Virus record (IMG/VR): IMGVR_UViG_3300026518_000006
Coordinates: 171,594-235,593 of that record
DNA: 64,000 bases
Direction: 5' to 3' (one strand)
The notes under the pieces were generated by a model. That model saw only the letters and a list, made by a program, of their open reading frames with translations. It searched no databases and was not told the DNA's origin. A program made the translations under genes and the position numbers. Below, piece by piece: positions 24,611 to 42,643 of the stretch (positions are counted from its first letter, which is position 1; each line of letters begins with the position of its first letter).

Positions 24611-25744
24611 ATGGCTTGTTCATTAGAGGGTGGGTGTGGTAGCTCATCAGAAAGTATTCATATAGATATCAATACTACTAGCATTTGTAATATTGCTTGT
24701 ACTTATTGTTCAGAGGGAAATGAGTGTGGTTTGAGTACTCTATATATGGGGAATACTGAGGTAAAAGTAGAAGACTTGATTAAAAAATTAGGCAAAGACC
24801 CCGCTAAACATAAGACTATAAATTTTTGGGGGGGAGAGCCTTTTGTAAATTTTGATTTCTGCAAAGCTATTATAGACGGTTTTAAAGATGACAAAACATT
24901 TAGTTTCTTTTTTTATACCAATGGGTTGTATATACCAAATTATATCGACCAATTAAAGCGATGGAATGAAGAATTCGGGAAAGAGTTAAACGCTGATGGA
25001 CAAAATAGATTGTATCTTCAAATAAGTTATGATGGGCGACACCTCACAAATACAGTGAGAGTGGATAAAGGCGGTCACGGCACTGCTGATAGAGTTGAAA
25101 AGGCATATAAATTACTAAAAGAAAACAATATAGGAACTTCATTAAAAGCAGTGATTAGCACCGATGGTTTTCCATATCTTTTTGAAAGCTTTAAAGATTT
25201 ATATGAGCTTCAAGGTTTTTATTCACCAACACCTGATTTATGGTCTGATAGAAGTGAAGAAGAGTTCAATACTGATTTAGAAATACTTGGAAAAGAGCTT
25301 GAGAAGATAGCAAAGTATATATACCAAAATGATTTGAGTCCTGAAGTATTTAGTTGGTTTGCTAAATCAAGAGCGATTTGTAGTACAGGTGCGGGTATGC
25401 TTAGTATAGACCTTGATGGTGGCATATACCCTTGTCACGCAGGTATGTATGGTGAAAGCGAAGAGCATAAAATAGGAGAGCTTGAAGATTGGGAACATAT
25501 TAGAGAAAATGTTATGGATGACTTTAAAAAAATTAATACCAATCTTCCATTGGAATGTCAAACTTGTGATGTAAATTATTGTATGAAGTGCCAAATATCA
25601 AACTACGCAAAATCTACAAAAGATACATACGAGGAAAGATTTACAGATTATCAAGCAAATTGGCAGGTTTGCAAAATATTTAAAATGAACGACAAATATA
25701 ATAAAACACTGAGATATGCAATGACACAAAAAGGATTGAGATGA
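24611..25744 (+). CDS. Radical SAM/SPASM enzyme 1
   Basis: CNIACTYC, FWGGEP, TNG, ISYDG; SPASM cysteines CSTG...YPCH...CQTC....CMKC. Confidence 0.93.
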   Translation: MACSLEGGCGSSSESIHIDINTTSICNIACTYCSEGNECGLSTLYMGNTEVKVEDLIKKLGKDPAKHKTINFWGGEPFVNFDFCKAIIDGFKDDKTFSFFFYTNGLYIPNYIDQLKRWNEEFGKELNADGQNRLYLQISYDGRHLTNTVRVDKGGHGTADRVEKAYKLLKENNIGTSLKAVISTDGFPYLFESFKDLYELQGFYSPTPDLWSDRSEEEFNTDLEILGKELEKIAKYIYQNDLSPEVFSWFAKSRAICSTGAGMLSIDLDGGIYPCHAGMYGESEEHKIGELEDWEHIRENVMDDFKKINTNLPLECQTCDVNYCMKCQISNYAKSTKDTYEERFTDYQANWQVCKIFKMNDKYNKTLRYAMTQKGLR

Positions 25745-26364
25745 GTGCCAAACTCACATCTCAAGAGCTCAAAGATAAAGCAAATAAAAACAATCCTGAT
25801 GTGCAAATCATAGGTAAATATATAAATTCCAAAACAAACATCTATGTTATTTGTAAATGTGGCAATACGACATCTGTTAGACCCAGTGAATTATATAAAT
25901 CTTGGCGATGTTTTGAGTGTGGTATAAAAGCAAGAAAATACATAAATGGAAATGGAGGATGGTCAACTAAAAGAAATAAAGAAGCTAAAAACAGAATAAT
26001 TCAAAAACACAAAGAATTATTATCCAAAAAATTGCCACATATTGAGTTGGTAGGAGATTATGAGGACAGTAAAACAAAGACAAATTATATCTGTTTTAAG
26101 GTTGGATTAACTCTTTATAAGTATAATGATGTTACGAAATGTATAAAAAATCGCTTTAGAAAAGAGAATAATAATATACTTCTGTTAGGATATATTATAT
26201 TCAAAAATGGAGCGGAAGGTTATGAGTTGGAGCAAAGAATCTTAAATTCTCATCAAAAATATAACTCGGATATTTTGCAATTTGGTGGTAATTCCGAACT
26301 GTTATCTGAGAATATTATTGCTCTCGATAAATACAAATTCATAAAAACAAAGGAAATTATATGA
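25741..26364 (+). mobile_element. Homing-endonuclease-like gene (zinc-ribbon repeats plus GIY-YIG/T5orf172-like C-terminus), apparently internally truncated
   Basis: YINSKT....CKCG...CFECG repeat; a second repeat runs straight into FKVGLT...RF...ELEQ...GNSEL and lacks the YLY segment seen in 34201-34911. Confidence 0.6.
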
Positions 26365-27660
26365 AAACAAACACAACAAACACAACAAACACACAAAAAT
26401 ATACTGAGCTTCAAGACAATAATATAAAAATGAAGTACAATATGAAAACAAACACAACAAACACAACAACCAAAATTAATACCAAAAAACCAACACAAAA
26501 AAGTAAAGGTAATGGATTTAAAACATTTACACTTGAAGTACAAACAACACAAAAATGCAATTTGGGCTGTCCTCGGCTTTGCCGATAAGTTAATTTTTTA
26601 GTATTTAGAGTAAATACCTTATTGCTATGTAGCAAATAGAGACCTTTTTCTTACACCTGAAGTATTTGATAAAAGTTTCGAAAGAATTATTGATTTAATG
26701 CAGAGAAGTGGCACTACCAATTTGAATATTAGTTTTTTTGGTGGCGAGCCTTTATTAAATTTTGAAGTTATCAAGCATATTACTAAAAGAGTTGAAGCAC
26801 TCCCTATTAGAACAGACTTAGTTTTAATTTCAAATATGACTATGATTACAGAAGAAATTTCAGACTTTTTGTTTGAGCATAATATTGGTGTGTCTTGGTC
26901 TTTCGATGGTATGGGGTCTAATGAAACAAGACCACTTTTGCCTATTTTTGAAAACAAGAATAAAGACGGAAAATTATACAATGGAATTTTAGACCTCTAT
27001 GAAGACAAAAAAGACCTTATTTTAAAGCACACCAACGGCTGTAAAATTATGATTTGGGCAGGAAATATGCACCAAATGAGCGAAAATTTAGACTTCTTTG
27101 TTGATTGGGGTTTAACAGGGCTTGATTACTCATTAGTAAGAGATGATGTGTGGACTAAAGATGATTTGATAGCATTTAGAGGACATCTAAGAGACTTAGC
27201 CGATAAGTATATTCAGTACACAAAAAAAGGTGTCCCTTTACATATAGGTTTTTTTGATTTAGCTATTGGTGATAATGTTATTAACTTTACATTTGGCAAA
27301 AGAGATTTCGGGTGTTTTGCAGGTGTAAATGGTGCAAATATGACACCAACAGGAGAGTTCTACCCTTGTGCTAGATTTGCTACAAAATCACTTATGAAAA
27401 TTGATGATGAGTATGATTTTAATTATTGGGCTGAACAATTTAGACCTGCCAATTATGATAAATGCAAGACTTGTGATATTCAACAAGTTTGTAACGCAGG
27501 ATGTACCTTTAGTCAAGTTAGAAATGACAATAAACCTGTGGATAGTGTTTGTGAGTTGTATCATATGATACAAGAAGAAACGATTAGAATAGTACACGAA
27601 TTAAAAGACAACGAGTTGTTTCAAGAACAGGTTATGTCATTATTTAACAATATGGGGTGA
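26361..27660 (+). CDS. Radical SAM/SPASM enzyme 2, interrupted by a 46-nt coding gap (join 26361..26573, 26620..27660; about 417 aa)
   Basis: CNLGCP ends at 26573 and YCYVANRD resumes at 26620, in frame with the 26698..27660 ORF (FFGGEP, SFDG, CFAG...YPCARF, CKTC....CNAGC); joining restores CNLGCPYC. Confidence 0.88.
26574..26619 (+). other. Candidate programmed translational bypass (hop) element
   Basis: CCT take-off (26571-73) and CCT landing (26617-19); hairpin TCGGC-TTT-GCCGA then TAA; hairpin GTATTTA-GAG-TAAATAC; GAG 6 nt before the landing codon. Confidence 0.7.
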
Positions 27661-28046
27661 TTATGGTGGGTTATATTTTAGAGTTTATATTTGAGTTATT
27701 GATTGGAATAATTACTATTGTAACAGCGTTGGTTATTATTATATTTGGGTTTGTATTTTTGTCTGTGGCAAATCTATTTGATAAATTATCTGATAAATTA
27801 TCTGATAAATTCTTTAGTAAAATAGAAACAAAAAAGGATAAAAATTGAGTTGTGAAACTGAACACAAAAACATAGATATAAATGATTTAGAAACAATGTT
27901 ACAAGAAGCCCGTAAAGGCAGAGCCAAAATAGACAAACAATATGTAGATTTTGATGAAAAAGGTCATTTGTTTGAATACAATATAGACTTTAATCAGTTT
28001 TTAGATGATATTAATTATATATTTAAAAAACACAAAGAGCGAAGTA

Positions 28047-28877
28047 GTGGACAAAAGAAATAATATCAGCACTCAAAATACCAACCTTGTGTATTTTACC
28101 ACAGCCTGCAATCTAGGGTGCACATATTGTTTCGAACAACTTGACAATATAAAACCAAAGCACATTCCAATACAAGAGTTGTATAAGATTGCAGACCGAG
28201 TTATAGAAGCTGAAGACCCCAACCTACAAACTCATTTTGTATTATATGGTGGAGAAGCAACACTTCGTTGGAAAGAAGCTGAACTCTTTATGGAATATGC
28301 ACACTCAAAAAAGAACAATGTCACATTTAACCTAATCACAAATGGAATATTGTTTTTAGATGATGAGTTTTTTAAGAATTTCTTTAGTAATAAATATTAT
28401 AATAATGGTATGCTCAGTATTGATATCTCATTTGATGGAGATAAGGGTAATGTTGAGCGTGTGTATAAAGATGGTGGAAGTAGTACTGAAGATGTTATTA
28501 TGGTTTTCAGTAAACTTAAAGTTTATAATCTTCGTTGGAGATTACGATACACAATTCACAAAAAAAACATAGATACTTTTGTTTATGATATTAAGAAATT
28601 GATTAAACATTTCAAACCCGAAAGAGTAATAAAAAATGTAGTATATCACGAACTTGATGAAAACGACCTATCTATGTTGGAGAAAGGCTTTGAGGAACTA
28701 AAGAAGAATTGGGATAACAAAAAAGACACTCCTATTTGTGATTTAGTTTGCGATACTTGTGATGGGTGTTCTATGACATTTGAAAACTATGCTAACCATA
28801 CTCCTGTAGGCACAAGCGTACATCCCAAGCAACAAGCTAAAATATATGATACTCTTGATAAACTAAAATATAAATAA
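28047..28877 (+). CDS. Radical SAM enzyme 3
   Basis: CNLGCTYC, YGGEA, TNG, ISFDG; C-terminal CDLVCDTCDGC; probable GTG start at 28047. Confidence 0.9.
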   Translation: MDKRNNISTQNTNLVYFTTACNLGCTYCFEQLDNIKPKHIPIQELYKIADRVIEAEDPNLQTHFVLYGGEATLRWKEAELFMEYAHSKKNNVTFNLITNGILFLDDEFFKNFFSNKYYNNGMLSIDISFDGDKGNVERVYKDGGSSTEDVIMVFSKLKVYNLRWRLRYTIHKKNIDTFVYDIKKLIKHFKPERVIKNVVYHELDENDLSMLEKGFEELKKNWDNKKDTPICDLVCDTCDGCSMTFENYANHTPVGTSVHPKQQAKIYDTLDKLKYK

Positions 28878-29270
28878 GAAAAGGAAATTTAATGAGCAAA
28901 AATACAACCAGTACTGAAACTACAAATAATAACGAAGTAGCACCTCCATTTGTTGAAGCAACTGAAGAAATTATTGAAATTTCAAAGGTATATGAAGCAT
29001 ATGGGGTTAGAGAGTTATTTCTTGACATCTTGGGGGTTTTTCTTGAGGTGACAAGAAACCTTGGAGCAGAAGCAAAAGGTATAAGTAGAACTGAAGTTAA
29101 AATGAAAATTTTTGAAAAGATGTTTGACATAAATATTGAAGAAGAAATTGAGAAAAAGGTTCAAGAGTATATTCAAAACAATACCTCAGACGCTGATACC
29201 GCAGATGTAGACGCTGAATTATTGGAAAGTATTCGCTCTAATTTCAATGAATATTTAAAGGATTAGAATT

Positions 29271-29783
29271 ATGAGTGATTGGCTAAAAAATCCATACGGA
29301 ACCCCAGGAGGAGACGAAAAAACTTATTCTTCTGAAGAATTAGCTCAAATGGGGGTAAATATAGGTGAGTTAATCACCAATGAAAAATTCAATTATTTAT
29401 CAGGGAAAGTTAAAAACGAATCTGCAAGAAGAGGTGTGGGGGTACCTGATTATGAGCGAAATGACGGTGAACTTATCACCGCTGTGGATTACAATGTGAT
29501 AATTGACAGAATTAATAATGTGTTGGATATTCCGAGAAACCCTGATGGAGCAGATTTACCACATTTGTCAAATGTTGCTATTGGAGATTTAATAACCGCT
29601 TTAATTCACAATAATATAAAAAACAAGCTTGTTGATGCAGGAAATCAATGTATGTGTAACTGTAATTACTGTGCTTGTAACTGTAATCAGTGCATCTGTA
29701 ACTGTAATCACGCTTGTGTGTGTAACTGTAATTATTCTGATGAACGACTTAAAACAAATATCGTTTATATAGGTGTTTTTTAA
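29271..29783 (+). CDS. Cys-rich protein ending in the first motif of a Peptidase_S74 chaperone domain; candidate radical SAM substrate
   Basis: Three G(E/D)LIT....N repeats, then CMCNCNYCACNCNQCICNCNHACVCNCNY (12 Cys) and SDERLKTNI. Confidence 0.75.
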   Translation: MSDWLKNPYGTPGGDEKTYSSEELAQMGVNIGELITNEKFNYLSGKVKNESARRGVGVPDYERNDGELITAVDYNVIIDRINNVLDIPRNPDGADLPHLSNVAIGDLITALIHNNIKNKLVDAGNQCMCNCNYCACNCNQCICNCNHACVCNCNYSDERLKTNIVYIGVF

Positions 29784-30082
29784 TGTTTGGTTGGAATTTT
29801 ATAAAGGCATTAAAGCCCGCCAAATATGAGTACTCAAGTGTGGATGATAATCTTGAAATATCGAAAGATGGTAGAACTCATTTTGGAGTTATGGCGCAAG
29901 ATATTGAAGAATACCTGAAAAGTGTTTCTGATGAAGATTTCGCTATAATAGAAAAAGACGAAAACGGGTATATGATGGTAAATTATACCGAGCTGATTGC
30001 CCCTATGATAGCCACTATCCAACAACTTCAAGAAAGAGTGGAAGAACTAGAAATCCAAGTTTCTAACCACTCTTCAAAATAA
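29783..30082 (+). CDS. Remainder of the Peptidase_S74 / intramolecular chaperone domain
   Basis: FIKALKP..YEY, HFGVMAQDIE, VNYTELIAPMIATIQQLQERVEELE; TAATG overlap with the upstream gene and AGGTG SD. Confidence 0.85.
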   Translation: MFGWNFIKALKPAKYEYSSVDDNLEISKDGRTHFGVMAQDIEEYLKSVSDEDFAIIEKDENGYMMVNYTELIAPMIATIQQLQERVEELEIQVSNHSSK

Positions 30083-30087
30083 TCACC

Positions 30088-30140
30088 AACCTCTTTTAAA
30101 GATTTTACTTTTTTAAAAAGTAAAATATTTCAAAGAGGTT
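30088..30140. repeat. Extended palindrome copy after the S74 gene
   Basis: AACCTCTTT...AGATTTTACTTTT-TTA-AAAAGTAAAATAT...AAAGAGGTT. Confidence 0.85.
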
Positions 30141-30757
30141 GTTTCTTCAAAAAAATTTAAGCCTATTTTTATATAATAATTCAATTTAACATAAGGTATT
30201 ATAATGCTATTCGAGATAAAACGAAACGACAACAAAATTTATATTTTAGGTAAAGCTACTTCAAAAAATGAAAGTTCCCTTGAGTTTGATGATAGTTTAG
30301 AGGCTGTAGTAAATGAAAATAGAGAGAAAAATAAGATAGTATATTATGACACTAATCTTGACAAAATTAAAATTGAAGACTCAAAGTATAGAGATATTCC
30401 GGTGACAGACTTTAATCGAGTAAAAGCCCTTAAAAAGGCTAGATTGGATTTAGAAAGTATCGTAAAAGATGTGGATATGATTGACTACATCAGATATATT
30501 GATTGCAATAACGAGCTTAATTCAAAAGGTTATTTTGTGACCGATGAAAATCGTGAGGAGGTTTATCTTGATATTTTAGAAAAAGGTGACGAAAAAGTGA
30601 TTGATATCCTTGAAGAATTTCTGATTACTAAAGATAAACTTACAATTATAAAATCAGCCAAGAAAAGATATGATGAGCTTGAAGAGGAAATTAAAGCGTC
30701 AAGTGAAGAAAATTTGGACACAAAAAAATTAAGTGAATTGTTGAATATAGAGTTCTA

Positions 30758-31561
30758 ATGGAACATATAGGAGTATTCTACGATTTAATACCACACAAAA
30801 AAATAAACGGAAGTCTATTTTACGCTTTTGAATATTTTGTATTTTTAAATAAGTTTAAAAAAACTGTATTTTATATTTCTAATATTAGAGATGAGTATAT
30901 TGGTGAATTAAAAGAGGTATTTAAAAATAGATATAATTTCAATAATCATCTACTTGATAGAATAATTGCGATAAAAACTATAAAGCAATATACACTGATA
31001 AACAAAAATATCAAAAAGGCTTTGTTTGTAGATGTCCGTAGTTACGAAAACATCCACGCTTTTTTAAATTGTCCACTAGTGATATACTCAAATGAGGCGC
31101 ACGAAATAACCACCAAAAAACCACACAAAGTATTTGGGTACTATGACTATCAAAATTTCCAAATCAAAGAAAAACTAAAGTTTAATTTTGAGATATATAA
31201 GCCCATATCGAACAAGAAAACAAACACTGCACTTGTAACAAGAGTATTGGGAGCTGAAAATGTTATTCATAAAATAGACATAAAAGAAAACAATATAATA
31301 TATAAACCTAAAGAACACGCTATAGAAAGTGTTTTTGAAAAATTTGACACACTGTATTATTATCACAGCTTCTTGGACACAAATAATCGCCTTATAGTTG
31401 AAAGTTTATATTACAACAAGAATGTTGAAATTATATATACAGGACTCAAAAAAGATAGTGTTTATTATCGTTATAATGATATTATGAATAACGGGGTAGA
31501 CGGGTATCGTCTGACAAAAGATGATTTAATAATTCAGGAAATGCTAAGTGAAAATAGTTAA
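30758..31561 (+). CDS. Putative glycosyltransferase-like protein (paralog A)
   Basis: Shares G..F...EY and F..FDT..Y...R.I.E..YY.K.V motifs with the next gene; resembles the GT-B C-terminal domain. Confidence 0.4.
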   Translation: MEHIGVFYDLIPHKKINGSLFYAFEYFVFLNKFKKTVFYISNIRDEYIGELKEVFKNRYNFNNHLLDRIIAIKTIKQYTLINKNIKKALFVDVRSYENIHAFLNCPLVIYSNEAHEITTKKPHKVFGYYDYQNFQIKEKLKFNFEIYKPISNKKTNTALVTRVLGAENVIHKIDIKENNIIYKPKEHAIESVFEKFDTLYYYHSFLDTNNRLIVESLYYNKNVEIIYTGLKKDSVYYRYNDIMNNGVDGYRLTKDDLIIQEMLSENS

Positions 31562-32438
31562 ACTTGACGGTGATTTAACTTTGACTTATAGTTGGAGTAA
31601 CAATAATCACGGTATTTGTGGACACACTTTTGAAGTAATTGAGTACTACTTTATACTGAAGGACTTTTTTGATACAAACATTTTATTATGTGAAGATATT
31701 ACACCTGAAATATTTAAATCGGCTATTGAGGACAAATATGATTTCACAAAAGAAGAAATTGCAGATATTTTAAACAATACAAAGTTTATTAATAGACCTA
31801 TATTATTAAAAGGAAAGAATATTTTATTTGTTGATGGTGGAATTATTAACACCAACAACTACACTCTCCTATTTGACAATATTTTTTACTTTGCTTGCGG
31901 GAATAAAGAGGTCAAACATAACAATAAAAACAATGTTTATATTTTACAAGATGATAGAGTATATGAGCCTGTTGTTAAGAATGGCATAAATTATAAAAAG
32001 AAGTTATTATTTGATAGAATGAAGCCTATCAAAAACAATAAAACAGCAAATCTAATCTATGTTACAAAGAATTGCCGTGATATAAATGATGAGGTATTTA
32101 AAGAGCTTGAAAAAACCTACGATGGAAACTTTTTATACTTAGGAAATGAAGAAAAATACACCTCAAATAGATTTAAATTTATGAAAATGCCCGTCCGTAA
32201 CCTTTTTAGTGAGTTTGACACCTACATATATACTGAAGTTCCAAGACACTTTGATTGTAGCCCAAGGTTCATAGCTGAATGCAAATATTATGATAAAAAA
32301 GTAATATACCACAACATCTATTATTTAGAAGAAGATTTAGGATTAAAGTGGAGAAAGTATGATATAGAAAATGACTTTAATTCACTATTCTTAACTAAAG
32401 ACGATGACTTAATACCTATTATAAAGAGTATAATATGA
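31548..32438 (+). CDS. Putative glycosyltransferase-like protein (paralog B)
   Basis: GHTFEVIEYY...FSEFDTYIY...SPRFIAECKYYDKKV. Confidence 0.4.
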   Translation: MKIVKLDGDLTLTYSWSNNNHGICGHTFEVIEYYFILKDFFDTNILLCEDITPEIFKSAIEDKYDFTKEEIADILNNTKFINRPILLKGKNILFVDGGIINTNNYTLLFDNIFYFACGNKEVKHNNKNNVYILQDDRVYEPVVKNGINYKKKLLFDRMKPIKNNKTANLIYVTKNCRDINDEVFKELEKTYDGNFLYLGNEEKYTSNRFKFMKMPVRNLFSEFDTYIYTEVPRHFDCSPRFIAECKYYDKKVIYHNIYYLEEDLGLKWRKYDIENDFNSLFLTKDDDLIPIIKSII

Positions 32439-33061
32439 GTGAATGCAAAAACAAATACTCTATAGCGGTTACTTATGATTGTAATTGGAATTGTGGTTTT
32501 TGTATAGTTGATACTCATCATCAACCAAAAGTAACCTTTGAGGAGCTTAAAGAAAAGATAGATGAAGTAGAGCCCTTTTCGGAAGTATCGCTTAGTGGAG
32601 GAGAACCAGGACTACTTAAACAAAACGAGCTTGAGTATTGCATAAAAACCCTTAAAAACAAAAACTGTAAAATTAATGTTAATACAAACGGAACATTTTT
32701 TGTAAATCATAAAGAGTATTGTGATGATATAGATTTCTTTTATTATCATTGTTCGGAAAATTTGGATATAGATAAAGGTATATTGCTTGATGGGGTTCCG
32801 TTAGATAAAACCGAGTTTATGGTAGTATTGACAGATGAGAACTTTAAACGACTTGATTGGTTTATAGAAAACTATCCAAACATCTTATTTCGGGTAGCCT
32901 CTGCTGATGAAGCGATGGTAGGTGGAAAAAAGGGGACAACATTAAATACAAAAAATGCTATTAAAGTGTGGAAAAAACACAAAGACAAAATAACTAAAGA
33001 TAGTGTTATGTATCTACTTGAGAATTGTGTTAGTGTTAATAATGAATACAAGATAAAATAA
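32435..33061 (+). CDS. Radical SAM enzyme 4 (short)
   Basis: CNWNCGFC, LSGGEPG, NTNG. Confidence 0.9.
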   Translation: MSECKNKYSIAVTYDCNWNCGFCIVDTHHQPKVTFEELKEKIDEVEPFSEVSLSGGEPGLLKQNELEYCIKTLKNKNCKINVNTNGTFFVNHKEYCDDIDFFYYHCSENLDIDKGILLDGVPLDKTEFMVVLTDENFKRLDWFIENYPNILFRVASADEAMVGGKKGTTLNTKNAIKVWKKHKDKITKDSVMYLLENCVSVNNEYKIK

Positions 33062-33075
33062 ATTAGAGGTGTAAT

Positions 33076-34131
33076 TTGAGTAAAGTAAAGAGTCAAAGTA
33101 TTTTCAATTCAGCCTCTGTTGGAGGGATTATACCTGATACGACAGAGCCTATTTGCGAAAGAGCTAAATTAGATACAGGCACACATTGTCAAGCAAAGTG
33201 TTTTTTCTGCTATTATATTGATAGACTTGATGAGGTAACGCCTTTTGATGTTATTAGAAAAAGAATAGATTATTTGGTTGAATGCAGGATTAAAGAAGCT
33301 GATTTAAGTGGCGGGGAAAGTTCTATACATAAAGATTGGTTCAAGATACTCGACTATTGTCGAGAAAAAGGACTGAAAATTTCAACACTAAGCAATGGTA
33401 TTAAATTTGCGGATTTTGAGTTTTTAAACCAAAGTAAAGAGCACGGATTAAGTGAAATATTATTTAGCCTGCACGGTTATGATGAAGAAAGTCATAATCA
33501 AATAGTAGGGTCTAAAATAGCATTTAAAAATATCATACAATCAATAAAAAATGCTCATAAATTAGGTATAAAAGTGCGTATAAATTGTACAGTCACAAAC
33601 AAAAATTATACACAAATAGATACAAAATTTGTGGAATTAGTAAGAACACTAATGCCTTTTGAGGTAAATTTTATTACACTAAATTATTGGGATGATGCCA
33701 AAACACAAAAAACGATAGATTATAACCAAATAACCCCTCATATACATAAGGCTATCGATGAGCTTAAAGATTTTGTACCATATATTAATGTGCGTTATAC
33801 CCCTTATTGTTTTATGAAAGGGTATGAGAAATATGTGTGCAACTATTATCAGCATATATATGATATATATGATTGGAATATAGCAGTTTATGACCAAAAT
33901 ATAAGCCCTGATGAATACAAGAAAGACCCACTTAAAGCCTTATATGATAGTGCGAAAAGAAATAGATTAAACTCCTATTACAAAACAAAAGAGTGTTTTA
34001 ACTGTAAATACTACTATATATGTGATGGAATTGAAAATTCTATTCAACAAATAGAATTACATCCTGAAAGTGGAGAGAAAATAAGCAATCCAAACTTTTA
34101 TCGTAAAAACTTTTACAGTTATTCAAAATAA
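33076..34131 (+). CDS. Radical SAM enzyme 5
   Basis: CQAKCFFC, LSGGES, SNG, FSLHG; C-terminal PYC...CFNC...ICDG. Confidence 0.9.
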   Translation: MSKVKSQSIFNSASVGGIIPDTTEPICERAKLDTGTHCQAKCFFCYYIDRLDEVTPFDVIRKRIDYLVECRIKEADLSGGESSIHKDWFKILDYCREKGLKISTLSNGIKFADFEFLNQSKEHGLSEILFSLHGYDEESHNQIVGSKIAFKNIIQSIKNAHKLGIKVRINCTVTNKNYTQIDTKFVELVRTLMPFEVNFITLNYWDDAKTQKTIDYNQITPHIHKAIDELKDFVPYINVRYTPYCFMKGYEKYVCNYYQHIYDIYDWNIAVYDQNISPDEYKKDPLKALYDSAKRNRLNSYYKTKECFNCKYYYICDGIENSIQQIELHPESGEKISNPNFYRKNFYSYSK

Positions 34132-34200
34132 ACACTATTAAAGATGTAATTAAGTTTGATTAATTAAAATAATTAATCAAAACATAAGGTTAAACACAGT

Positions 34201-34911
34201 ATGAGAATTTTATCAAGAGAAGAAATCATAAAAGTTTGCGAAGAAAAGCACGGAAAGAAATACAACTACAGTCTTGTCAAGGATAGTTTAGGTTCAGACT
34301 CAATCCCTATTATTTGTGATAAACACGGTATTTTTAAACTATCTGTAAATTCCCACAAAAGAGGCGCAAGATGTCCCGTTTGTCATCCTCCTAAACTTTC
34401 TAATGAGGAAGTGATAGAGCAATTCAAAAAAGCCAATAATAACCAATACATATATGACATCACTAATTATACAAGCAATCAGACAAAAGTAGAAGTAATA
34501 TGTAAAAAACACGGAGTTTTTACGACATCCCCTGATAACCACAAAAGAGGCAACGGATGTCCTGATTGTGCGATTGATAAGATATATAAAAACAAACCTA
34601 CTTATCTTTACCATCTTAGTATTAATAATAATGGGAAGACGCAATATAAATTGGGGGTGTGTTTGAAGCGTGATTTTGATACAGTTGAAGAGGCTGTTAA
34701 TTACAGATATAGTTATGAAAAGAAGCATAATGTTGAATTTCATATACTTGATTATAAATTATATGATGATGGGGTACAGGCATATAAACTCGAACAGGCT
34801 GTCATAAATGAATTGAAAGATAAACATATACCTAAAAATGAAAGTATTATGTTTAGCGGATATACTGAAATATTTAATGAGGATTTTATATCGGATTTCA
34901 ATTTATTTTAA
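34201..34911 (+). mobile_element. Homing-endonuclease-like gene (two C.KHG.F...H..G..CP.C zinc ribbons plus GIY-YIG-like nuclease)
   Basis: ICDKHGIF...HKRGARCPVC and ICKKHGVF...HKRGNGCPDC; TYLY...YKLG...RY...LEQ...GYTEIF. Confidence 0.7.
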
Positions 34912-35032
34912 GGTTGAAATGGTATTATTCATTAATAATTTGTTAATTAATGTTGTATTTTATTAACAGATTACAAATAAAATAAGTCATTCGACTAAAA
35001 AACAAAAAATCCCAAGAGGTAAAGGAATAATT

Positions 35033-35614
35033 ATGAAGCATATTATCGCTTTTTTCGGAATTATGGCAGTTATGGTATCAACAGCAGTTGCAGGTGGGGA
35101 CATCGCACCAGTAGAGCCTGTAGTAGAGCAACCCAAGAACTTTTATGTAGGTGGCGCATTAACAGCTTCGCAAGTATATGACCAAGGTGACTCTCATTGG
35201 TTTAACGACACTGCATCAGCAGAAACAGGATATGGTCTTGGTGTTCAAGCAGGTTATGTATTCTTTAGAACAGGTGATTTTTCTTCGGCTGTAGAGGTTA
35301 GAGCTAACAGAACATTTTGGTCTTTTGCAGATGATGTTGATGGTGAAGTAACCTCTTACGGTGCTTTTGTTAAACCTGAGTATAGCTTTGGTGATTATGG
35401 TGTTTATGGTCTTGTTGGTTATGGTCAAACAAGACTTACAGGTACAGGATTCAAACAAACAGAAAATGGTTTTGCATATGGCGGTGGTGTAGAATATGCA
35501 CTTACTGAGTCATTTGCTGTATTTGTTGATTATGTGGTTAATCCTGAAATCAAAGAAACTCCGAAAGATATCGAAAATGACACTATTTCAATCGGTGTAA
35601 ACTACAAGTTCTAA
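35033..35614 (+). CDS. Outer-membrane beta-barrel protein (OMP_b-brl/porin family)
   Basis: Signal peptide, GGDIAPVEP, alternating beta strands (FYVG, GVQAGY, YGLVGYG, FAYGGGVEY), terminal GVNYKF. Confidence 0.88.
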   Translation: MKHIIAFFGIMAVMVSTAVAGGDIAPVEPVVEQPKNFYVGGALTASQVYDQGDSHWFNDTASAETGYGLGVQAGYVFFRTGDFSSAVEVRANRTFWSFADDVDGEVTSYGAFVKPEYSFGDYGVYGLVGYGQTRLTGTGFKQTENGFAYGGGVEYALTESFAVFVDYVVNPEIKETPKDIENDTISIGVNYKF

Positions 35615-35634
35615 TCCTTAATTAGAGCTATTTG

Positions 35635-35656
35635 AGAACACTCCGAAGAGTGTTCT
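35635..35656 (+). terminator. Hairpin after the OMP gene
   Basis: AGAACACTC-CGAA-GAGTGTTCT. Confidence 0.6.
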
Positions 35657-35679
35657 ATTAATAGTTTGTAAGGATATAA

Positions 35680-36369
35680 GTGAAAATAACCAATTTTAAA
35701 CTACTTCAATCGGAGCAGATGGACTATTTTGATATCAAGATAAATATCAAGATTTCCTCGCAGATAAATCAATGGACAGAAGAAGATTTTGAAACAGTAT
35801 TGGGCTTTATAGCAAAACAAAAATACAACAAAATTTGGGTTATAATTGAAACTATCGACACAAATCATTGGGAATACTTCATATATGAACTAATAAAGAT
35901 ATTCTATAATAAAGAGCTTTTAGTAGAGTTTCCTAAATTAGATATAGATGATAATAGATTGGAACTTTTTGTGACCCAAATCAACGAAATAAAATCATAC
36001 CAACAAGAGTTTGTGTTTTGTGAAGACAATAGAGTGTCGGATAAATACATAGATGATGAGGGTATATACTACAGAGAAAATGACTCCAAAAAACACCATA
36101 GAAATTTTAAAATAATAACGAAAAACAAAGAAAAGATAATCACAGAAAAAGAAGCCTTAAAACTGCCATTTAAAGATATGAAGTGTCAGAGTGGTGTGAA
36201 AAGTCTTTTTATAGATGAGATGTTAAACGCTTACCATTGTATACAAGATTGCCAGTCTGATACAAACATAATTAACTTGAAAACCAATAAAAGCGATAAT
36301 TTTTTTAAGCCCACTATATGTGAGCATAAACAATGTAAAAGCGGTTTAGATTTTGAGAAGTTTATATGA
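35680..36369 (+). CDS. Degenerate radical-SAM-like protein retaining only the C-terminal twitch/SPASM-like cysteines
   Basis: No CxxxCxxC; C-terminal CQSG..SLFID......HC...ICEHKQC matches the C-termini of neighbouring rSAMs. Confidence 0.5.
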   Translation: MKITNFKLLQSEQMDYFDIKINIKISSQINQWTEEDFETVLGFIAKQKYNKIWVIIETIDTNHWEYFIYELIKIFYNKELLVEFPKLDIDDNRLELFVTQINEIKSYQQEFVFCEDNRVSDKYIDDEGIYYRENDSKKHHRNFKIITKNKEKIITEKEALKLPFKDMKCQSGVKSLFIDEMLNAYHCIQDCQSDTNIINLKTNKSDNFFKPTICEHKQCKSGLDFEKFI

Positions 36370-37001
36370 AACTCAGTGTTTTAATACCTACCCATAATAG
36401 ACCAAAAATGTTTAAAAGAGCCCTCAGCAGTATATTGAGTGTGATGGGAAAATATAATGTTGAGATTATTGTAAGATGTGATGACAACAGTGTTACAAAA
36501 AAGGATATACCTGTAGGACATAATATCCACCTCTACCACGCTAAAAAAGACATCAATGGAATGTACAAAGAACTCTATGAAAAGAGCACAGGGGATTATA
36601 TCTATTACTTAGAGGACGATGATTATATTACGCCTTATTTTGAAACAGCATATAAAGAAGTATCAAACGGTTTAGAACTCTTTGTAGGGCTGTATAATAG
36701 TGTTAATAAAGAGACCAATATTTCGCAAATATCCGAATATCGGATAAAACACAACACCTTATATATACCAAGTGATTTTCAATTGAGTCAAATGATTTTT
36801 AAACGAAATTTAATAAAACCAAGTGATTTCCCAACATCATACCATAATGAAAATGATGAGGTGTTATTGAAAACTATTTTAGACAGAGTTAATAAAAAGA
36901 AAGTAAAGTATTCAATGCGATATATATTTAATCAGGACATTGACTATAATAACCTCAGTTTAGATGATATTTTAAAACCAAGAAAGATAAAAAATGGATA
37001 A
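36366..37001 (+). CDS. Glycosyltransferase family 2
   Basis: LSVLIPTHNRP, EIIV.CDD, GDYIYYLEDDD. Confidence 0.88.
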   Translation: MKLSVLIPTHNRPKMFKRALSSILSVMGKYNVEIIVRCDDNSVTKKDIPVGHNIHLYHAKKDINGMYKELYEKSTGDYIYYLEDDDYITPYFETAYKEVSNGLELFVGLYNSVNKETNISQISEYRIKHNTLYIPSDFQLSQMIFKRNLIKPSDFPTSYHNENDEVLLKTILDRVNKKKVKYSMRYIFNQDIDYNNLSLDDILKPRKIKNG

Positions 37002-37893
37002 TTTTGACTATTTTTATGAAGATGTAGTGAATTATAGCAACGACAACACTATTCAATTATTCATAGACATCACTACAGTTTGCAATCTTACCTGTAGCTA
37101 TTGTTTCGCACGAAAAGAAAAGGATTGGGATGAGGTTTTAGAGACAGAAAGAGTGCAGAAAATTATGACACTAATCAAACAAAGTCCTTATAATTTCAAT
37201 GTATTGTTATTCGGAGGAGAACCACTACTTCATAAAGATATAGAAACGATAATCAATATTATTAAAAAGTCAGATAAAGTAAAGAATATTATGGTGCTTT
37301 CAAACGGGACTTTAAGTGACGGATTGTATGATTTCAAAGATGTGTATTATTGCTTGACACTTCACGAACTTACAGATAAACAAATAGATAAGTTTGTGAG
37401 GCATTGTCATAAAATAGAGCCCGATAAATTGAAGATAAATATACCTTTAAATATTTACAACACTTCACTAAAAAGAGCGTACAAAAAACTAATTCAAGAG
37501 GGCTTTAAAGACAAGATATTTTTCAGTGTTATTTATGATGATGATACTAAAAATATAATACCTCTTCCTGAAATAAGAGAACGCCTTGATTATATCGACT
37601 TTACTATAGATGATAATCACTATCTCAACGGAAAGAGAATGAACTATATGGATTATTTAGATTTGCATTTATCACTAAATCCAAAAAGAGATGTAAAGAC
37701 CTGTTATATTAATGAACTAAACATAGATATTGATGGTAATATAAGTAATGATTGTATGGGTATAAATTCCAACATTTATGATGATGTTTTTTTCTTTAAA
37801 CACTTTAAATTAGGGTATAATTGCACAAAAGAACAATGTAAAGATTGTACAGGAACTATCACCTGTGCTAAAGAGTTACAGGAGAGAAAATGA
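36994..37893 (+). CDS. Radical SAM enzyme 6
   Basis: CNLTCSYC, FGGEPLLH, SNG; C-terminal Cys cluster. Confidence 0.9.
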   Translation: MDNFDYFYEDVVNYSNDNTIQLFIDITTVCNLTCSYCFARKEKDWDEVLETERVQKIMTLIKQSPYNFNVLLFGGEPLLHKDIETIINIIKKSDKVKNIMVLSNGTLSDGLYDFKDVYYCLTLHELTDKQIDKFVRHCHKIEPDKLKINIPLNIYNTSLKRAYKKLIQEGFKDKIFFSVIYDDDTKNIIPLPEIRERLDYIDFTIDDNHYLNGKRMNYMDYLDLHLSLNPKRDVKTCYINELNIDIDGNISNDCMGINSNIYDDVFFFKHFKLGYNCTKEQCKDCTGTITCAKELQERK

Positions 37894-38931
37894 CAGAATA
37901 TGATGAGTTAAAGACTGTAGTAGTTGGAAGAGATTTTGACTGCAACTATATTATTGACAAAGAACTAAAATACTCATTAACATTGAAAGGTGATTTTGAT
38001 TATGATAAATTCTATAATGATATTAAAAAGAATTTAAGAGAGCGAAATGAATCACTTGATAAGTTATCAGAAATATTGGAAAGTAAAGGCGTTAAAGTAT
38101 TTAGACCAAAATACAACTCTTATGATGAGATAGTTGATGACTCAGGTAAAGATGTTGCTGATACTCAGAATTTTGATAGCAATGCCCGGGATATTTTTAT
38201 AGTTATCGAGGATAAAGTGATTATTGCGCCTACATTTAACTCAAGAAGAAATAAGTTATATAAACTCTATGAAAATGTGTTTGAGTATTTGTTGGGAAAA
38301 GGGTATAAAATAATTTATCCTCCTGAAACAAACGGAAAGCGTGATTTCGATTATTACCCTATCACAACTCCTGTTGATTTTTTTGTTGAAAAAGCTCACG
38401 ACTATGTTTGAGACAGCCAATTTAATCAAAACAAAAGATGGAGTTGTGTTTAATATAAGTAATCATAATCATTATAGTGGTTATCTTTGGTTTAAAGAAA
38501 TTGTTGATTGTGATGTTTTTCCTTGTTTTGTTGATTATGGTCATATAGATGGGGGAATGAATATAGTCAATGATGACTTATTACTATTATGTTTTAACTC
38601 AGACCATATATCTGAATCTGAAATATTAAAAAAAATACCAACACCATTTAAAAAATGTGATGTAATAACGGTTGACAAAAATCCTAAATCATATAAAAGA
38701 AAAACCGATGTATTTTTGGCTTCAAAGGGAGGAATGGAAATAAACAGTTTATCAATAAATCCAAACACTATTATAATATCAAAAAATAAATCTTTAAAAA
38801 AGAAGCTTAATGATAGAAATATAGATGTTATCGAAATGTCGTTAAAACACGATAGACTGTTTAATGGAGGTGTGCATTGTGTTACTGTAGACTTAGAAAG
38901 AAGTGATGATGAATCCACACTATCAATTTAA
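37890..38931 (+). CDS. Amidinotransferase (glycine/inosamine-phosphate type), frameshifted into two ORFs near 38378-38410
   Basis: EYDELKTVVVG, GVKVFRP and ARD in ORF1; FETAN, HIDG, N.LSI and GGVHCVTVDL in ORF2; removing one T from the T7 run at about 38378 fuses them. Confidence 0.8.
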
Positions 38932-39727
38932 CTATTACATCAATACCATTTGCAATCAGTATTGTGATTATTGTTATGCACGAAATGGGTATGAATGGAA
39001 TAAAATAAAACCTTTAAGGACTATCTTGACAGAATTAAGTTGGTTCAAAGAATTTAAGCATAAATCTATTATAACTCTTATTGGAGGAGAGCCTACTTTA
39101 CACCCAAAATTCAATGAAATAGTCACATTTATAGCTGAAAATCTTGACCATTATTTGCATATATATACAAACGGACAATTTAATGTAGATAAAGTGTCTC
39201 ATACACTTAAACATAATGCGCTTTGGACTTTCAGTTATCACGGTAAATATGTGAAAGATGAAAAATTATTTATAAAGAACATCGAGTATTTTATAAACAA
39301 TAATATAGATTTTAATATTACTATTATAGCGCAAAACACGATTTCTGATGAGTTTTTCAATTTTTTGAAAAACAATAATTTAAAAGAAAAGGTATCAGTG
39401 ACATTTATCCACGAATCAAATGATTATACACCAAACGAAACAATTAATTCGATATTCTTCAGTGATTGGTTCAAAAACACCAAAAATATGGTAAGTTTTT
39501 ATGATGATAACTATTTTAAGAAAAATGCAAGATATAAAGGTCGCAAATGCTATTACAATGAGATTGATATATTGGATGGAAAAATACACTCTAATGAATG
39601 TAATATAGATTTTTGTGAGCCATTTACAAAAGAAGCACTGTTGCAATTACCGCCTTTTTCTCCTGTTGTTTGTGATAGAGACTATTGTAAACAAGATTGT
39701 GCTTTTCTGTTCCCAAAGAAGGTATAA
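38903..39727 (+). CDS. Radical SAM enzyme 7
   Basis: CNQYCDYC, IGGEPTLHP, TNG, SYH. Confidence 0.9.
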   Translation: MMMNPHYQFNYYINTICNQYCDYCYARNGYEWNKIKPLRTILTELSWFKEFKHKSIITLIGGEPTLHPKFNEIVTFIAENLDHYLHIYTNGQFNVDKVSHTLKHNALWTFSYHGKYVKDEKLFIKNIEYFINNNIDFNITIIAQNTISDEFFNFLKNNNLKEKVSVTFIHESNDYTPNETINSIFFSDWFKNTKNMVSFYDDNYFKKNARYKGRKCYYNEIDILDGKIHSNECNIDFCEPFTKEALLQLPPFSPVVCDRDYCKQDCAFLFPKKV

Positions 39728-39728
39728 A

Positions 39729-40679
39729 ATGCAAACTTACAATAACAAAGAAATTGTTAAATTTTATAATAGAAATGAAATTAAAGACCATAATTTTTTA
39801 ATATTTGAACTACTTATAATAGAGGTGTGTAATCTACATTGTTCTTATTGTTATATGCGAAATGAAAGCCCCACTTGGGAAAGTATATACCGAAAAGAAA
39901 AAATCACAGCTATTATAGAAAAATTATCGTCTTTAAATAAACCAGTATCAATTTGTTTGAGTGGAGGTGAAGCAACACTCAGCCCACATTTTATGTATTT
40001 TGTAAAATTGATAACTACACATATAAAAAATCCAAACAGTGCTATAAAGAACTTGCATATAAACACAAACTTCAGATTGTCTAAAGAGAAGATAAAAGAA
40101 ATTCAGTCTATAAATCCTAATGTTACATTTCACATATCTTACCACAGCTCTGACGAAACACCACAAGATGAGTTTATAGAAAAGTTATTATTGTTGCCAT
40201 CTGAACATAGAGAGCTAAATATTATGTTGCACCCAAAAAAATCTGAACTTAAAAAAACCGAAAACTTTATCCAAAAATGTATCGAAGCAGGTATAAACTT
40301 TTATGTCAAACCTGTCTATATAAATGGAAAATATAAACCCCAAAAACACGCCCTTGAAATTATTGAGAAGTATTCTCAATATACCACTAAAGAATATATA
40401 ATAGAAAGTAAAGAAGATAAAACACCAATGAATGATTGGGATTTATACCAAAATAATTTGATACCTTTAGATACTTTTGGTTATAACTGCAAATATACTT
40501 TTTTTACTATTGATGGTAATGGGTATATCAAACAGATGTGTAAATTGTTTGATATCAATAATATTTTTGATGATTTTCAATTTTTCTTAGACTATAATAT
40601 AAAAGATGGTATAATATGTCCATTTAAAAATTCTTGCCTATGGGCTTCGTCTTTAGACCACTTAAAAGAGAAGATATGA
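39729..40679 (+). CDS. Radical SAM enzyme 8
   Basis: CNLHCSYC, LSGGEATL, NTN, SYH; probable start MQTYNN at 39729. Confidence 0.9.
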   Translation: MQTYNNKEIVKFYNRNEIKDHNFLIFELLIIEVCNLHCSYCYMRNESPTWESIYRKEKITAIIEKLSSLNKPVSICLSGGEATLSPHFMYFVKLITTHIKNPNSAIKNLHINTNFRLSKEKIKEIQSINPNVTFHISYHSSDETPQDEFIEKLLLLPSEHRELNIMLHPKKSELKKTENFIQKCIEAGINFYVKPVYINGKYKPQKHALEIIEKYSQYTTKEYIIESKEDKTPMNDWDLYQNNLIPLDTFGYNCKYTFFTIDGNGYIKQMCKLFDINNIFDDFQFFLDYNIKDGIICPFKNSCLWASSLDHLKEKI

Positions 40680-41581: not shown

Positions 41582-41589
41582 GAATAAAA

Positions 41590-42579: not shown

Positions 42580-42643
42580 TTCCTAAACATTGCCATAAAA
42601 CTATTAAAAGTATTTTTAAAGGTAATTTATGGCATAATAAAGT

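Follow-up and report, generated by a model that had tools for sequence, protein, structure and literature searches.

A large environmental phage encodes a small protein, ORF1, that ends in a cysteine-asparagine-tyrosine repeat. In its family, this repeat gene nearly always sits beside genes for radical SAM (rSAM) enzymes, and in this phage the self-cleaving fibre-chaperone domain (Peptidase_S74) is split off into a separate gene, ORF2. This points to an undescribed, enzyme-modified phage protein, which its genomic context suggests to be virion-associated. The locus lies in a 64,000-nucleotide stretch (the window; positions 171,594 to 235,593 of IMG/VR record IMGVR_UViG_3300026518_000006). An initial annotation, made from the sequence alone, had described a Cys-rich array abutting a split S74 domain within an rSAM cluster, and our analysis confirms this observation in every detail. 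The accompanying interpretation, that autocleavage would leave an array possibly cross-linked by SPASM enzymes or loaded with metal, and that the chaperone may act in trans or be fused by −1 slippage, is supported in part.

Organization of the locus

ORF1 is 170 residues long. The motif GELIT is present at residues 32–36 and 66–70, and GDLIT at residues 105–109. The array, CMCNCNY-CACNCNQ-CICNCNHA-CVCNCNY, contains 12 Cys in 29 residues and is followed by the tail SDERLKTNIVYIGVF, in which Ser156-Asp-Glu-Arg-Leu-Lys161 precedes TNIVYIGVF and a TAA stop codon at 29781–29783. The ATG of ORF2 overlaps this stop (TAATG) in the −1 frame; it is preceded by AGGTG at 29771–29775, and the T-run at 29776–29781 is T6. 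No other SDxRLK tail or Cys array is present in the window. Nine rSAM genes lie between 24.6 and 42.6 kb, so the annotation of an rSAM cluster is correct.

Features of the Cys-repeat locus and its surroundings, with positions in the 64,000-nucleotide window
Position	Strand	Feature	Observations
24611–25744	+	rSAM/SPASM enzyme #1 (377 aa)	Pfam Radical_SAM E 5e-11, weak SPASM hit; best NCBIfam hit PapB ranthipeptide maturase, E 1e-22, 81 bits against a cut-off of 340; TIGR04085 SPASM domain 31 bits against 27; conserved position in related loci
26361–27660	+	rSAM/SPASM enzyme #2	Reading frame interrupted by 46 nt (26574–26619) inside the CX3CX2C motif; best NCBIfam hit PapB, E 1.4e-30; SPASM domain 35 bits against 27
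28005–28877	+	rSAM enzyme #3 (290 aa)	Pfam E 2.5e-14; C-terminal CX3CX2CX2C motif, Cys residues invariant in the alignment; the rSAM most tightly linked to the Cys-repeat gene
28869–28876	+	TATAAATA, T4-type late-promoter-like motif	15 nt before the acidic-protein gene
28892–29266	+	Conserved acidic protein (124 aa), function unknown	Immediately upstream of ORF1; positional orthologues in most loci; predicted five-helix, all-helical (AF2); no Pfam, PqqD or PDB analogue found
29271–29783	+	ORF1 (170 aa)
29271–29648	+	ORF1 N-domain (residues 1–126)	Helical (AF2), with three G-x-L-I-T...N repeats; pLDDT about 90 for residues 14–125, four helices; Glu50, Arg53 and Arg54 conserved
29649–29735	+	ORF1 Cys array (residues 127–155)	Four C-x-C-N-C-N-Y units; proposed rSAM substrate and mature C-terminus; AF2 confidence below 50
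29736–29783	+	ORF1 tail and stop	First strand of the S74 domain with the Ser156/Lys161 dyad; predicted cleavage between Tyr155 and Ser156 (29735/29736)
29783–30082	+	ORF2 (99 aa)	Remainder of the S74 domain with a C-terminal coiled-coil helix, translated separately
30087–30141	+	Long hairpin followed by a U-rich stretch	Terminator-like; −22.1 kcal/mol, z = −8.25, reached by 0 of 200 shuffles
30204–43339	+	Rest of the conserved cluster	184-aa protein (phrog_25260), 267- and 296-aa proteins, six more rSAM genes (32435, 33076, 36994, 38903, 39615, 41590), GT2 (36366), transketolase-like gene (42644); an endonuclease (34201) and an OMP beta-barrel gene (35033) are inserted

The architecture recurs in 142 cluster representatives at E<=1e-30, making it a large family and excluding a chance occurrence. 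The unit consensus is C-T-C-[N/D/Q]-C-N-Y, with Asn at position 6 in 91% and Tyr at position 7 in 93%; position 4 tolerates only Asn, Asp or Gln (95% combined). Searches of the Pfam and NCBIfam copies used here with ORF1 and ten diverse relatives returned no family other than S74. Structural searches with the N-domain model found no analogue in the PDB, while BFVD returned only uncharacterised phage and rudivirus proteins. A tblastn search of isolated phages with ORF1 found nothing; only the DNA of the array matched Campylobacter phages. Literature searches on CXXX-repeat systems, PF27846, the CNCNY motif, phage RiPPs and a trans-acting S74 found no description of this system.

The S74 domain is divided between two genes

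ORF2 matches Pfam Peptidase_S74 (PF13884) above the gathering score (28 bits against 22, E 2.7e-6), its residues 5–46 covering profile positions 18–54 of 58, and also matches the C-termini of tail-fibre PHROGs. PDB sequence searches with ORF2 and with a fused S74 piece gave nothing useful, and a first scan of IMG/VR was swamped by generic S74 matches. The tail of ORF1 is too short to score alone. However, when compared with P0037, an uninterrupted natural homologue with a full S74 match (profile positions 1–56), ORF1 aligns to residues 111–141 and ORF2 to residues 156–228; the two ORFs therefore partition one domain. The Ser, Asp and Lys of the S-D-x-R-L-K start are invariant in the family alignment, and the role of the Ser/Lys dyad is taken from PMC11058221.

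The division is conserved. Of 36 relatives that carry the same short tail, 31 have an S74 remainder of 85–153 residues as the next gene. These comprise 25 distinct junctions, with relative frames 0, +1 and +2 in 7, 11 and 7 cases and gaps of −13 to +25 nt, often with their own SD sequence. In the closest relative, L096, which comes from another sample, the T-run is broken (GTT CTT TAA TG) and the split is the same. Between the two, synonymous and non-synonymous changes are 12 to 1 in the array plus tail and 10 to 2 in ORF2 in its own frame, against 2 to 9 in the wrong frame, showing purifying selection on both ORFs. The initial annotation had proposed fusion by −1 slippage on GTT TTT TAA, and had named the T6 or T7 state of the run as a check on the split. 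A T6 run does precede the stop, a −1 shift would read through into ORF2, and fused homologues exist. Nevertheless, GGT GTT TTT TAA is not an X XXY YYZ heptamer, and the fused forms carry a different, short S74 cassette. A single protein, made by slippage or hidden by a homopolymer sequencing error, is therefore not supported and is largely refuted; we regard it as very improbable.

The remainder most likely acts in trans. Fused-short and split-long S74 forms replace each other as a cassette between near-identical phages (the locus pairs L016/L019 and L045/L053), with similarity collapsing only over the S74 segment, and one relative, L116, has four tandem tail-bearing paralogues and a single remainder gene.

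Cleavage between Tyr155 and Ser156, as the initial annotation had inferred, would leave the array at the mature C-terminus. Trimerization and self-cleavage were not assayed, but indirect support comes from natural members that end exactly at ...CNCNY, and from a separate clade that carries a Hint autoprocessing domain after the array in place of S74.

Association with radical SAM genes

The occurrence of homologues without rSAM neighbours had been named in advance as an outcome that would count against the proposed substrate role, and we examined the gene neighbourhoods accordingly. Clustering the loci on whole proteins merged everything through the array; clusters were therefore defined on the N-domain only, with 50% identity or less between clusters. 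Of 28 informative clusters, 26 have an rSAM gene within 6 kb, and 21 of 24 have two or more upstream, so the association passes this test. In the reverse direction, 39 of 44 loci with an rSAM#3 orthologue carry a Cys-array gene within 5 kb, against 0 of 34 loci with generic phage rSAMs. Gene order is conserved in every longer locus, and is the same in the related loci L005, L007, L009 and L011; in some clades the rSAM gene directly abuts the Cys gene. All loci belong to related phage modules, so these counts are not fully independent, and linkage could reflect a shared pathway rather than an enzyme-substrate pair. In Campylobacter phages, the distant 520-residue relative lies about 100 kb from the rSAM#3-like gene.

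The three upstream rSAMs are most similar to Cys-peptide thioether maturases (PapB, CXXX-repeat, SCIFF, QhpD), and the SPASM domains of #1 and #2 score above cut-off. However, none belongs to a named maturase family: the best scores, 68–107 bits, fall well short of the cut-offs of 340–425 for PapB (NF047865), TIGR04115 and SCIFF (TIGR03974), and rSAM scores are three- to five-fold below the curated cut-offs of every named family. No RiPP recognition element (RRE) was found. A Pfam search of ten small cluster proteins gave no PF05402 hit at E<=1, the rSAM cores start at about residue 20, leaving no room for an N-terminal RRE, and the AF2 model of the acidic neighbour is an all-helical five-helix protein for which Foldseek found no PDB analogue.

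The interruption of rSAM#2, which may leave the enzyme inactive, resembles the T4 mobA/gene 60 ribosomal bypass cassette: a homing endonuclease gene lies directly upstream, and a gap of about 50 nt sits inside an essential motif, flanked by identical codons, with a hairpin and then a stop just after the first one. Here, the stop is not adjacent to the take-off codon and bypassing has not been shown; it could equally be a disabling insertion. An uninterrupted rSAM#2 orthologue is present in L007.

The association bears on a rival, structural reading, which we consider unlikely: that the array is an intrinsic fibre element, a Cys/Asn/Tyr-ladder triple beta-helix held by disulfides or by metal ions along the three-fold axis, as in the HxH iron sites of T4 gp37, with the rSAM genes serving a sugar, cofactor or DNA modification pathway. 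S74 is a hallmark of trimeric fibres and spikes, Asn and Tyr are as conserved as Cys, as expected for ladders in a solenoid, tail-fibre genes are neighbours in L015, L033 and L095, and the cluster also holds GT2 and transketolase-like genes and, in relatives, KDO-synthase-like and epimerase genes; the lack of a detected RRE is also in line with this reading. Against it are the two-way, family-specific linkage, the abutting rSAM genes, the resemblance of the upstream rSAMs to Cys-peptide maturases rather than sugar or cofactor enzymes, the tandem paralogues, which resemble multi-precursor RiPP loci, and the absence of a confident AF2 fold for the array.

A carrier role, in which the array supplies Fe-S, metal or sulfur to the nine rSAM enzymes without being their substrate, appears very unlikely. 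The protein is extremely Cys-dense, the rSAM battery creates heavy Fe-S demand, and an A-type Fe-S carrier gene sits in the same cluster in L007. However, a carrier needs no self-cleaving S74 or Hint module, no variable N-domain and no tandem paralogues, the invariant Asn and Tyr would be unexplained, and tail-fibre neighbours do not fit.

Probable late expression and virion context

The acidic protein, ORF1 and ORF2 form a small unit running from the late-promoter-like motif to the terminator-like hairpin. Of 13 such motifs, 7 lie within 40 nt upstream of an ORF start, against 0.5 expected at random, although the total count of the motif is not enriched. Tail-fibre genes lie directly upstream of the family member in three loci, L015, L033 and L095, but not in this window. 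Only the S74 part resembles fibres, and the predicted N-domain is helical, unlike classical fibres, so that a place among tail fibre or spike proteins is neither supported nor excluded. No virion proteomics are available for this phage; in those of Campylobacter phage IBB_35 the homologue could not be traced in the supplements.

These data also bear on the possibility that ORF1 is a true RiPP precursor, its helical N-domain being a large leader that is removed and the modified peptide being released as a small effector (toxin, signal or anti-defence molecule). Relatives show a large conserved N-domain, a repeat core and tandem precursors, with a frequent A/S-G motif 2–3 residues before the first Cys, and long leaders occur in proteusins. 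We consider this very unlikely: no leader peptidase or exporter is found in the conserved cluster, the N-domain is predicted to be folded and acquires lectin- or Ig-like insertions in relatives, and the S74 trimerization module and fibre neighbours point to a protein product.

Discussion

The explanation we favour, as more likely than not, is that ORF1 belongs to a family of phage proteins with a fast-evolving helical N-domain, a strictly conserved (C-T-C-[N/D/Q]-C-N-Y)n array and a self-removing C-terminal module. In this view, the array is most likely modified after translation by the co-inherited rSAM/SPASM enzymes, above all the three encoded just upstream, the most plausible chemistry being Cys-to-Asn/Asp/Gln (or Tyr) thioether staples of the ranthipeptide/QhpD type. 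The S74 (ICA) domain would trimerize the protein and then cut itself off. In this phage and many relatives, the catalytic Ser/Lys strand of 12–15 residues stays on the substrate, while a separately translated subunit of roughly 85–100 residues would complete the fold in trans; the product is then probably a late, trimeric, virion- or fibre-associated protein. Our data demonstrate the separate genes and the selection that maintains them, whereas trans action, the cleavage site (from the S74 mechanism and the natural variants) and the modification are inferences; neither thioethers nor bound metal were measured, and no multimer was modelled.

Like the S74 intramolecular chaperones, the module starts with S-D-x-R-L-K, continues with the L-K-P..Y, G-V-M-A-Q-D and V-N-Y motifs and a coiled-coil helix, and sits at the C-terminus of its client, so trimerization-dependent self-cleavage is expected. 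It differs in being divided after its first strand, so that the chaperone is no longer intramolecular, in that one remainder gene can follow up to four clients, and in that the client is a protein of about 155 residues with a helical N-domain and a Cys array, not a long beta-rich fibre.

Ranthipeptide and sactipeptide systems (PapB/freyrasin, SCIFF, NxxC) and the QhpD/QhpC intra-protein thioethers (NCBIfam NF047865, TIGR03974, TIGR03906) share Cys-rich repeated targets encoded next to rSAM/SPASM enzymes, acceptor-like Asn/Asp/Gln residues at fixed spacing from Cys and multiple precursor paralogues, with QhpD a precedent for stapling a protein subunit rather than a small peptide. The present system is phage-encoded, its target is a folded protein with a self-cleaving follower, and up to nine rSAM genes share one cluster.

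Curators have already proposed Cys-repeat proteins, many of them viral, as modification targets. Pfam PF27846 (Pfam 38.1), automatically named 'Modification target Cys-rich repeat', was seen only through the ESM Atlas, where neighbouring clusters carry it (score 0.60) and ORF1's own cluster carries no Pfam family; its profile was not run on ORF1. In the CXXX-repeat system (TIGR04114/04115/04119), rSAM#1 and #2 show weak similarity to TIGR04115 and TIGR04119. The repeat described here is a C-x-C-x-C-N-Y unit, not CXXX, and the S74 or Hint follower is not part of those families as far as could be seen.

In the HXS antiphage system (PMC13128918), the HxS-repeat effector HxsA, also a repeat-bearing protein rather than a small peptide, is matured by two or more rSAM enzymes (HxsB/HxsC) together with a small accessory protein, and the rSAM genes at 32435 and 33076 are most similar to HxsC. 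That system is bacterial and periplasmic, with His-x-Ser repeats and no S74 module, and the HxsC scores (39 and 70 bits) are far below the cut-off of 268.

A more far-reaching possibility, which we put forward only tentatively, is that a widespread lineage of large phages builds a virion (fibre-tip or whisker) protein whose C-terminal array is covalently stapled by a dedicated battery of phage-encoded rSAM enzymes, and which is folded and trimmed by a naturally split S74 autoprotease, one free subunit of which serves several clients in trans. This would be the first RiPP-type maturation of a phage structural protein.

Why some phages carry about ten rSAM genes has been an open question since CP220 was sequenced in 2010 (PMC2853527), and this family supplies a concrete, testable substrate for at least part of that battery. 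It would extend RiPP-style chemistry from small secreted peptides to folded viral proteins. It would also provide a natural two-piece version of the S74 chaperone/autoprotease, which is useful for understanding how that domain folds triple-stranded fibres and could be used as a trans-acting trimerization and cleavage tool.

Sequence features of ORF1 and ORF2

The initial annotation described a Cys-rich protein abutting a split Peptidase_S74 domain within a radical SAM (rSAM) cluster, and this description is confirmed. Read directly from the sequence, ORF1 contains three G-[E/D]-L-I-T...N repeats and the array CMCNCNY-CACNCNQ-CICNCNHA-CVCNCNY, followed by SDERLKTNIVYIGVF and a TAA stop. ORF2 begins at the ATG overlapping this stop, with AGGTG located 7 nt upstream of that ATG. 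ORF2 matches Pfam Peptidase_S74 above the gathering score (28 bits against 22), but only over profile positions 18-54 of 58, and it also resembles the C-termini of many tail-fibre PHROGs. In P0037, an uninterrupted natural homologue with a full S74 match (profile positions 1-56), ORF1 aligns to residues 111-141, ending at SDERLK, and ORF2 to residues 156-228. The two ORFs therefore divide one S74 domain after its first strand, and the Ser and Lys named in the literature as the catalytic pair (PMC11058221) stay on ORF1.

Positions of the features discussed (window coordinates unless a residue number or another locus is indicated)
Feature	Position	Strand	Remarks
ORF1	29271-29783	+	170 aa
ORF1 G-[E/D]-L-I-T...N repeats	residues 32, 66 and 105
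ORF1 Cys array	residues 127-155		12 Cys in 29 aa
ORF2	29783-30082		99 aa; -1 frame
Conserved rSAM cluster	24611-43339	+	about 18 kb
HNH endonuclease gene	25741-26364		ATGA overlap with rSAM#2
rSAM#2	26361-27660		interrupted
Duplicated low-complexity stretch, rSAM#2 N-terminus	26361-26480		KTNTTNTTN twice
Region around the rSAM#2 gap	26556-26640
Gap in rSAM#2	26574-26619		46 nt
Inserted endonuclease gene	34201-34911
Outer-membrane beta-barrel protein	35033-35614		193 aa
gp55-like late sigma factor	47056-47946
TATAAATA motifs upstream of ORF starts	358, 7051, 15220, 20090, 23245, 28869, 53969	- for 20090 and 53969	7-35 nt from the ORF start
Distant family member, Campylobacter phage vB_CjeM_WX1	L001:5131-6693
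Distant family member, Campylobacter phage CC_R7	L002:5131-6735
Tail-fibre genes directly upstream of family members	L015:35-1507, L033:538-1026, L095:4597-9582
Putative tail fiber protein, Campylobacter phage WX1	L175:14296-15810

Genomic context

The window belongs to a 235,593-bp contig that IMG/VR lists as viral; it is AT-rich and carries T4-like replication genes, a late sigma factor, a clamp loader and a ligase. The conserved cluster holds nine rSAM genes, a GT2 glycosyltransferase, a transketolase-like gene and several proteins with no family match. Most of its members have no assigned function. The cluster is shared with loci L005, L007, L009 and L011. Among relatives, L007 adds an A-type Fe-S carrier and five upstream 2OG-Fe(II) oxygenase genes, and L010 a KDO-8-P-synthase-like gene. 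Inside the rSAM cluster, next to an inserted endonuclease gene, sits an outer-membrane beta-barrel protein with a signal peptide (Pfam OMP_b-brl, E 2e-19), which looks like a host-derived moron and may hint at a Gram-negative host.

A large family without a Pfam or NCBIfam match

A word-indexed search gave 38 homologues, while a profile search of 1.84 billion cluster representatives gave 2786 hits at E<=1e-3, 397 at E<=1e-10 and 142 at E<=1e-30. ORF1 and ten diverse relatives match nothing in the Pfam and NCBIfam copies searched, apart from S74. The only PHROG hit is phrog_26958, which holds a 520-aa protein of the Campylobacter phages of the CP220 group; its 21-bp repeat was noted in 2010 only as a DNA repeat inside CPT_0180 (PMC2853527). 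In phage vB_CjeM_WX1 this distant family member is annotated as 'putative N-acetylneuraminate pyruvate lyase', which looks like a misannotation, and WX1 carries fewer copies of the 21-bp Cys unit than phage CC_R7. Across 253 proteins, the unit consensus is C-T-C-[N 66% / D 22% / Q 7%]-C-N(91%)-Y(93%), with an optional A/S spacer and 3 to 29 units per protein. AF2 modelling with the family alignment gives a confident four-helix N-domain (residues 14-125, pLDDT about 90) and no confident structure for the array. The predicted N-domain has no analogue in the PDB, and in BFVD it matches only uncharacterised viral proteins.

Division of the S74 domain between two genes

We fetched 92 loci carrying a family member (designated L followed by a number) and classified their C-termini. 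The commonest form ends, like ORF1, 12 residues after the Ser (...CNCNY|SDxRLKxxIxY[LMIF]). Of 36 such loci with room downstream, 31 have an S74-remainder ORF as the very next gene, mostly of 85-103 aa. There are 25 distinct junction sequences, with the relative frames 0, +1 and +2 occurring 7, 11 and 7 times, and gaps ranging from -13 to +25 nt, often containing GGAG-like sequences. The closest relative, L096 (76% amino acid identity, from a different sample), has GTT CTT TAA TG, so that the T-run is broken while the overlap and the frame are the same. Between the window and L096, the array plus tail shows 12 synonymous and 1 non-synonymous changes, and the first 42 codons of ORF2 show 10 synonymous and 2 non-synonymous changes in their own frame, against 2 synonymous and 9 non-synonymous when the same stretch is read in the frame of ORF1. 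A homopolymer sequencing error and the programmed -1 slip suggested in the initial annotation are therefore both rejected; the split is real, old and selected, and ORF2 is a gene in its own right.

Three observations support action of the S74 remainder in trans, which is an inference. Firstly, fused forms exist in 19 loci, but these carry a different, shorter S74 without the coiled-coil helix; on a tree of the N-domain, fused and split forms interleave, and starred branches force at least seven changes for the split state. Secondly, DNA comparison of near-identical pairs shows why: L016 and L019 are 100% identical upstream, L045 and L053 are also close, and in both pairs similarity collapses only over the S74 segment and resumes downstream, the two forms being interchangeable cassettes at one site. 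Thirdly, in locus L116, four tandem Cys-repeat paralogues each end in the 12-residue tail and are followed by a single 88-aa remainder gene, providing a rationale for the split, as one free subunit can serve several clients.

The C-termini of the relatives also bear on the mature end of the protein, which we infer to be the array. Seven loci and several database proteins end exactly at ...CNCNY, and one well-supported clade (100/100; L034, L037, L077, L078, L087 and the database protein P0153) has a Hint/intein-like autoprocessing domain (CFLAGTPV...) immediately after the array instead of S74. Three different solutions (fused S74, split S74 and Hint), and one with no follower, would thus all leave the same end; the evidence for self-cleavage is only indirect.

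Association with radical SAM enzymes

Every longer locus shows the same gene order: rSAM/SPASM, rSAM/SPASM, small ORFs, an rSAM of about 288 aa, an acidic protein of about 125 aa, the Cys-repeat gene or genes, the S74 remainder where present, a homologue of the 184-aa protein, two proteins of about 300 aa, an rSAM, GT2 and then further rSAMs. The initial annotation had proposed that homologues occurring without rSAM neighbours would speak against the array being an rSAM substrate. The loci were clustered on the N-domain alone at 50% identity, giving 36 clusters. Of the 28 clusters with at least 3 kb of flank, 26 have an rSAM within 6 kb, and a 27th, L010, has one by eye; of the 24 with at least 3 kb upstream, 21 have two or more rSAMs upstream. 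In several clades the rSAM gene directly abuts the Cys gene. In the reverse direction, searching IMG/VR with a profile of orthologues of rSAM#3 (the last of the three rSAMs upstream of ORF1) gave 78 loci. A Cys-array ORF lies within 5 kb in 39 of the 44 loci with E<=1e-13, and in none of the 34 loci with weaker, generic rSAM hits. Linkage alone does not separate a substrate from a partner in the same pathway, the loci are related modules, and in Campylobacter phages the distant relative lies far from the rSAM#3-like gene.

The three upstream enzymes, rSAM#1-3, are most similar to thioether-forming Cys-peptide maturases (PapB, the CXXX-repeat family, SCIFF and QhpD), at E 1e-19 to 1e-30, and rSAM#1 and rSAM#2 have SPASM domains above cut-off. 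All three, however, score 3-5 fold below the cut-offs of the named families. No RRE was found: Pfam finds no PqqD in ten small cluster proteins, and the conserved acidic neighbour is predicted to fold as five helices and has no PDB analogue. No leader peptidase or exporter is present. A literature search gave no paper on the related repeats, but the ESM Atlas places ORF1, whose own cluster has no family, near viral clusters carrying Pfam PF27846, automatically named 'Modification target Cys-rich repeat'; curators have therefore already proposed related repeats as modification targets.

The reading frame of rSAM#2 is broken exactly inside its CX3CX2C motif. The sequence reads C-N-L-G-C-P, followed by the gap between the P and Y codons and then Y-C-Y-V-A-N-R in the +1 frame, while the L007 orthologue reads CNLGCPYCYVANR without interruption. 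The gap is flanked by identical CCT codons and begins with a 5-bp hairpin followed by a TAA stop, and a homing-endonuclease gene of the HNH type lies directly upstream. This arrangement resembles the T4 mobA/gene 60 translational bypass cassette, although it could also be a disabling insertion. The interruption of rSAM#2 in this phage is among the points that speak against the rSAM-substrate reading. The N-terminus of rSAM#2 also carries a duplicated low-complexity stretch, which was not examined further.

Indications of late expression and of a virion protein

The T4 late-promoter motif TATAAATA occurs 13 times in the window, which is no more than chance. However, 7 of the 13 lie within 40 nt upstream of an ORF start on the same strand, against 0.5 for random positions. 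These seven are likely T4-type late promoters of this phage, which encodes a gp55-like late sigma factor. The motif at 28869 sits 15 nt before the acidic-protein gene, and a 24-bp hairpin (z = -8.25) follows ORF2; the acidic protein, ORF1 and ORF2 therefore look like one late transcription unit.

In L015, L033 and L095, the gene directly upstream of the family member is a tail fibre or spike (for example phrog_1640 at E 4e-39 and phrog_5073 at E 2e-116). These fibre genes share one C-terminal module (phrog_22593 / phrog_19602, with an ..ADLAE.Y.. motif), which also ends the 'putative tail fiber protein' of Campylobacter phage WX1. Larger family members carry extra, non-helical segments inserted in or added to the N-domain. 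The N-domain evolves quickly, with 40 non-synonymous and 40 synonymous changes against L096, while the array is nearly frozen.

Interpretation

The interpretation offered in the initial annotation is partly supported: a chaperone acting in trans and an array serving as rSAM substrate are supported as far as comparative genomics can go, while the frameshift is rejected. The separate S74 gene, its conservation and the two-way linkage are established by the comparisons, whereas action in trans, the mature end and modification of the array are inferred from them; neither the chemistry nor the location of the product has been demonstrated. The family is best placed with rSAM-matured repeat proteins, from which it differs in being joined to a naturally split S74 module.
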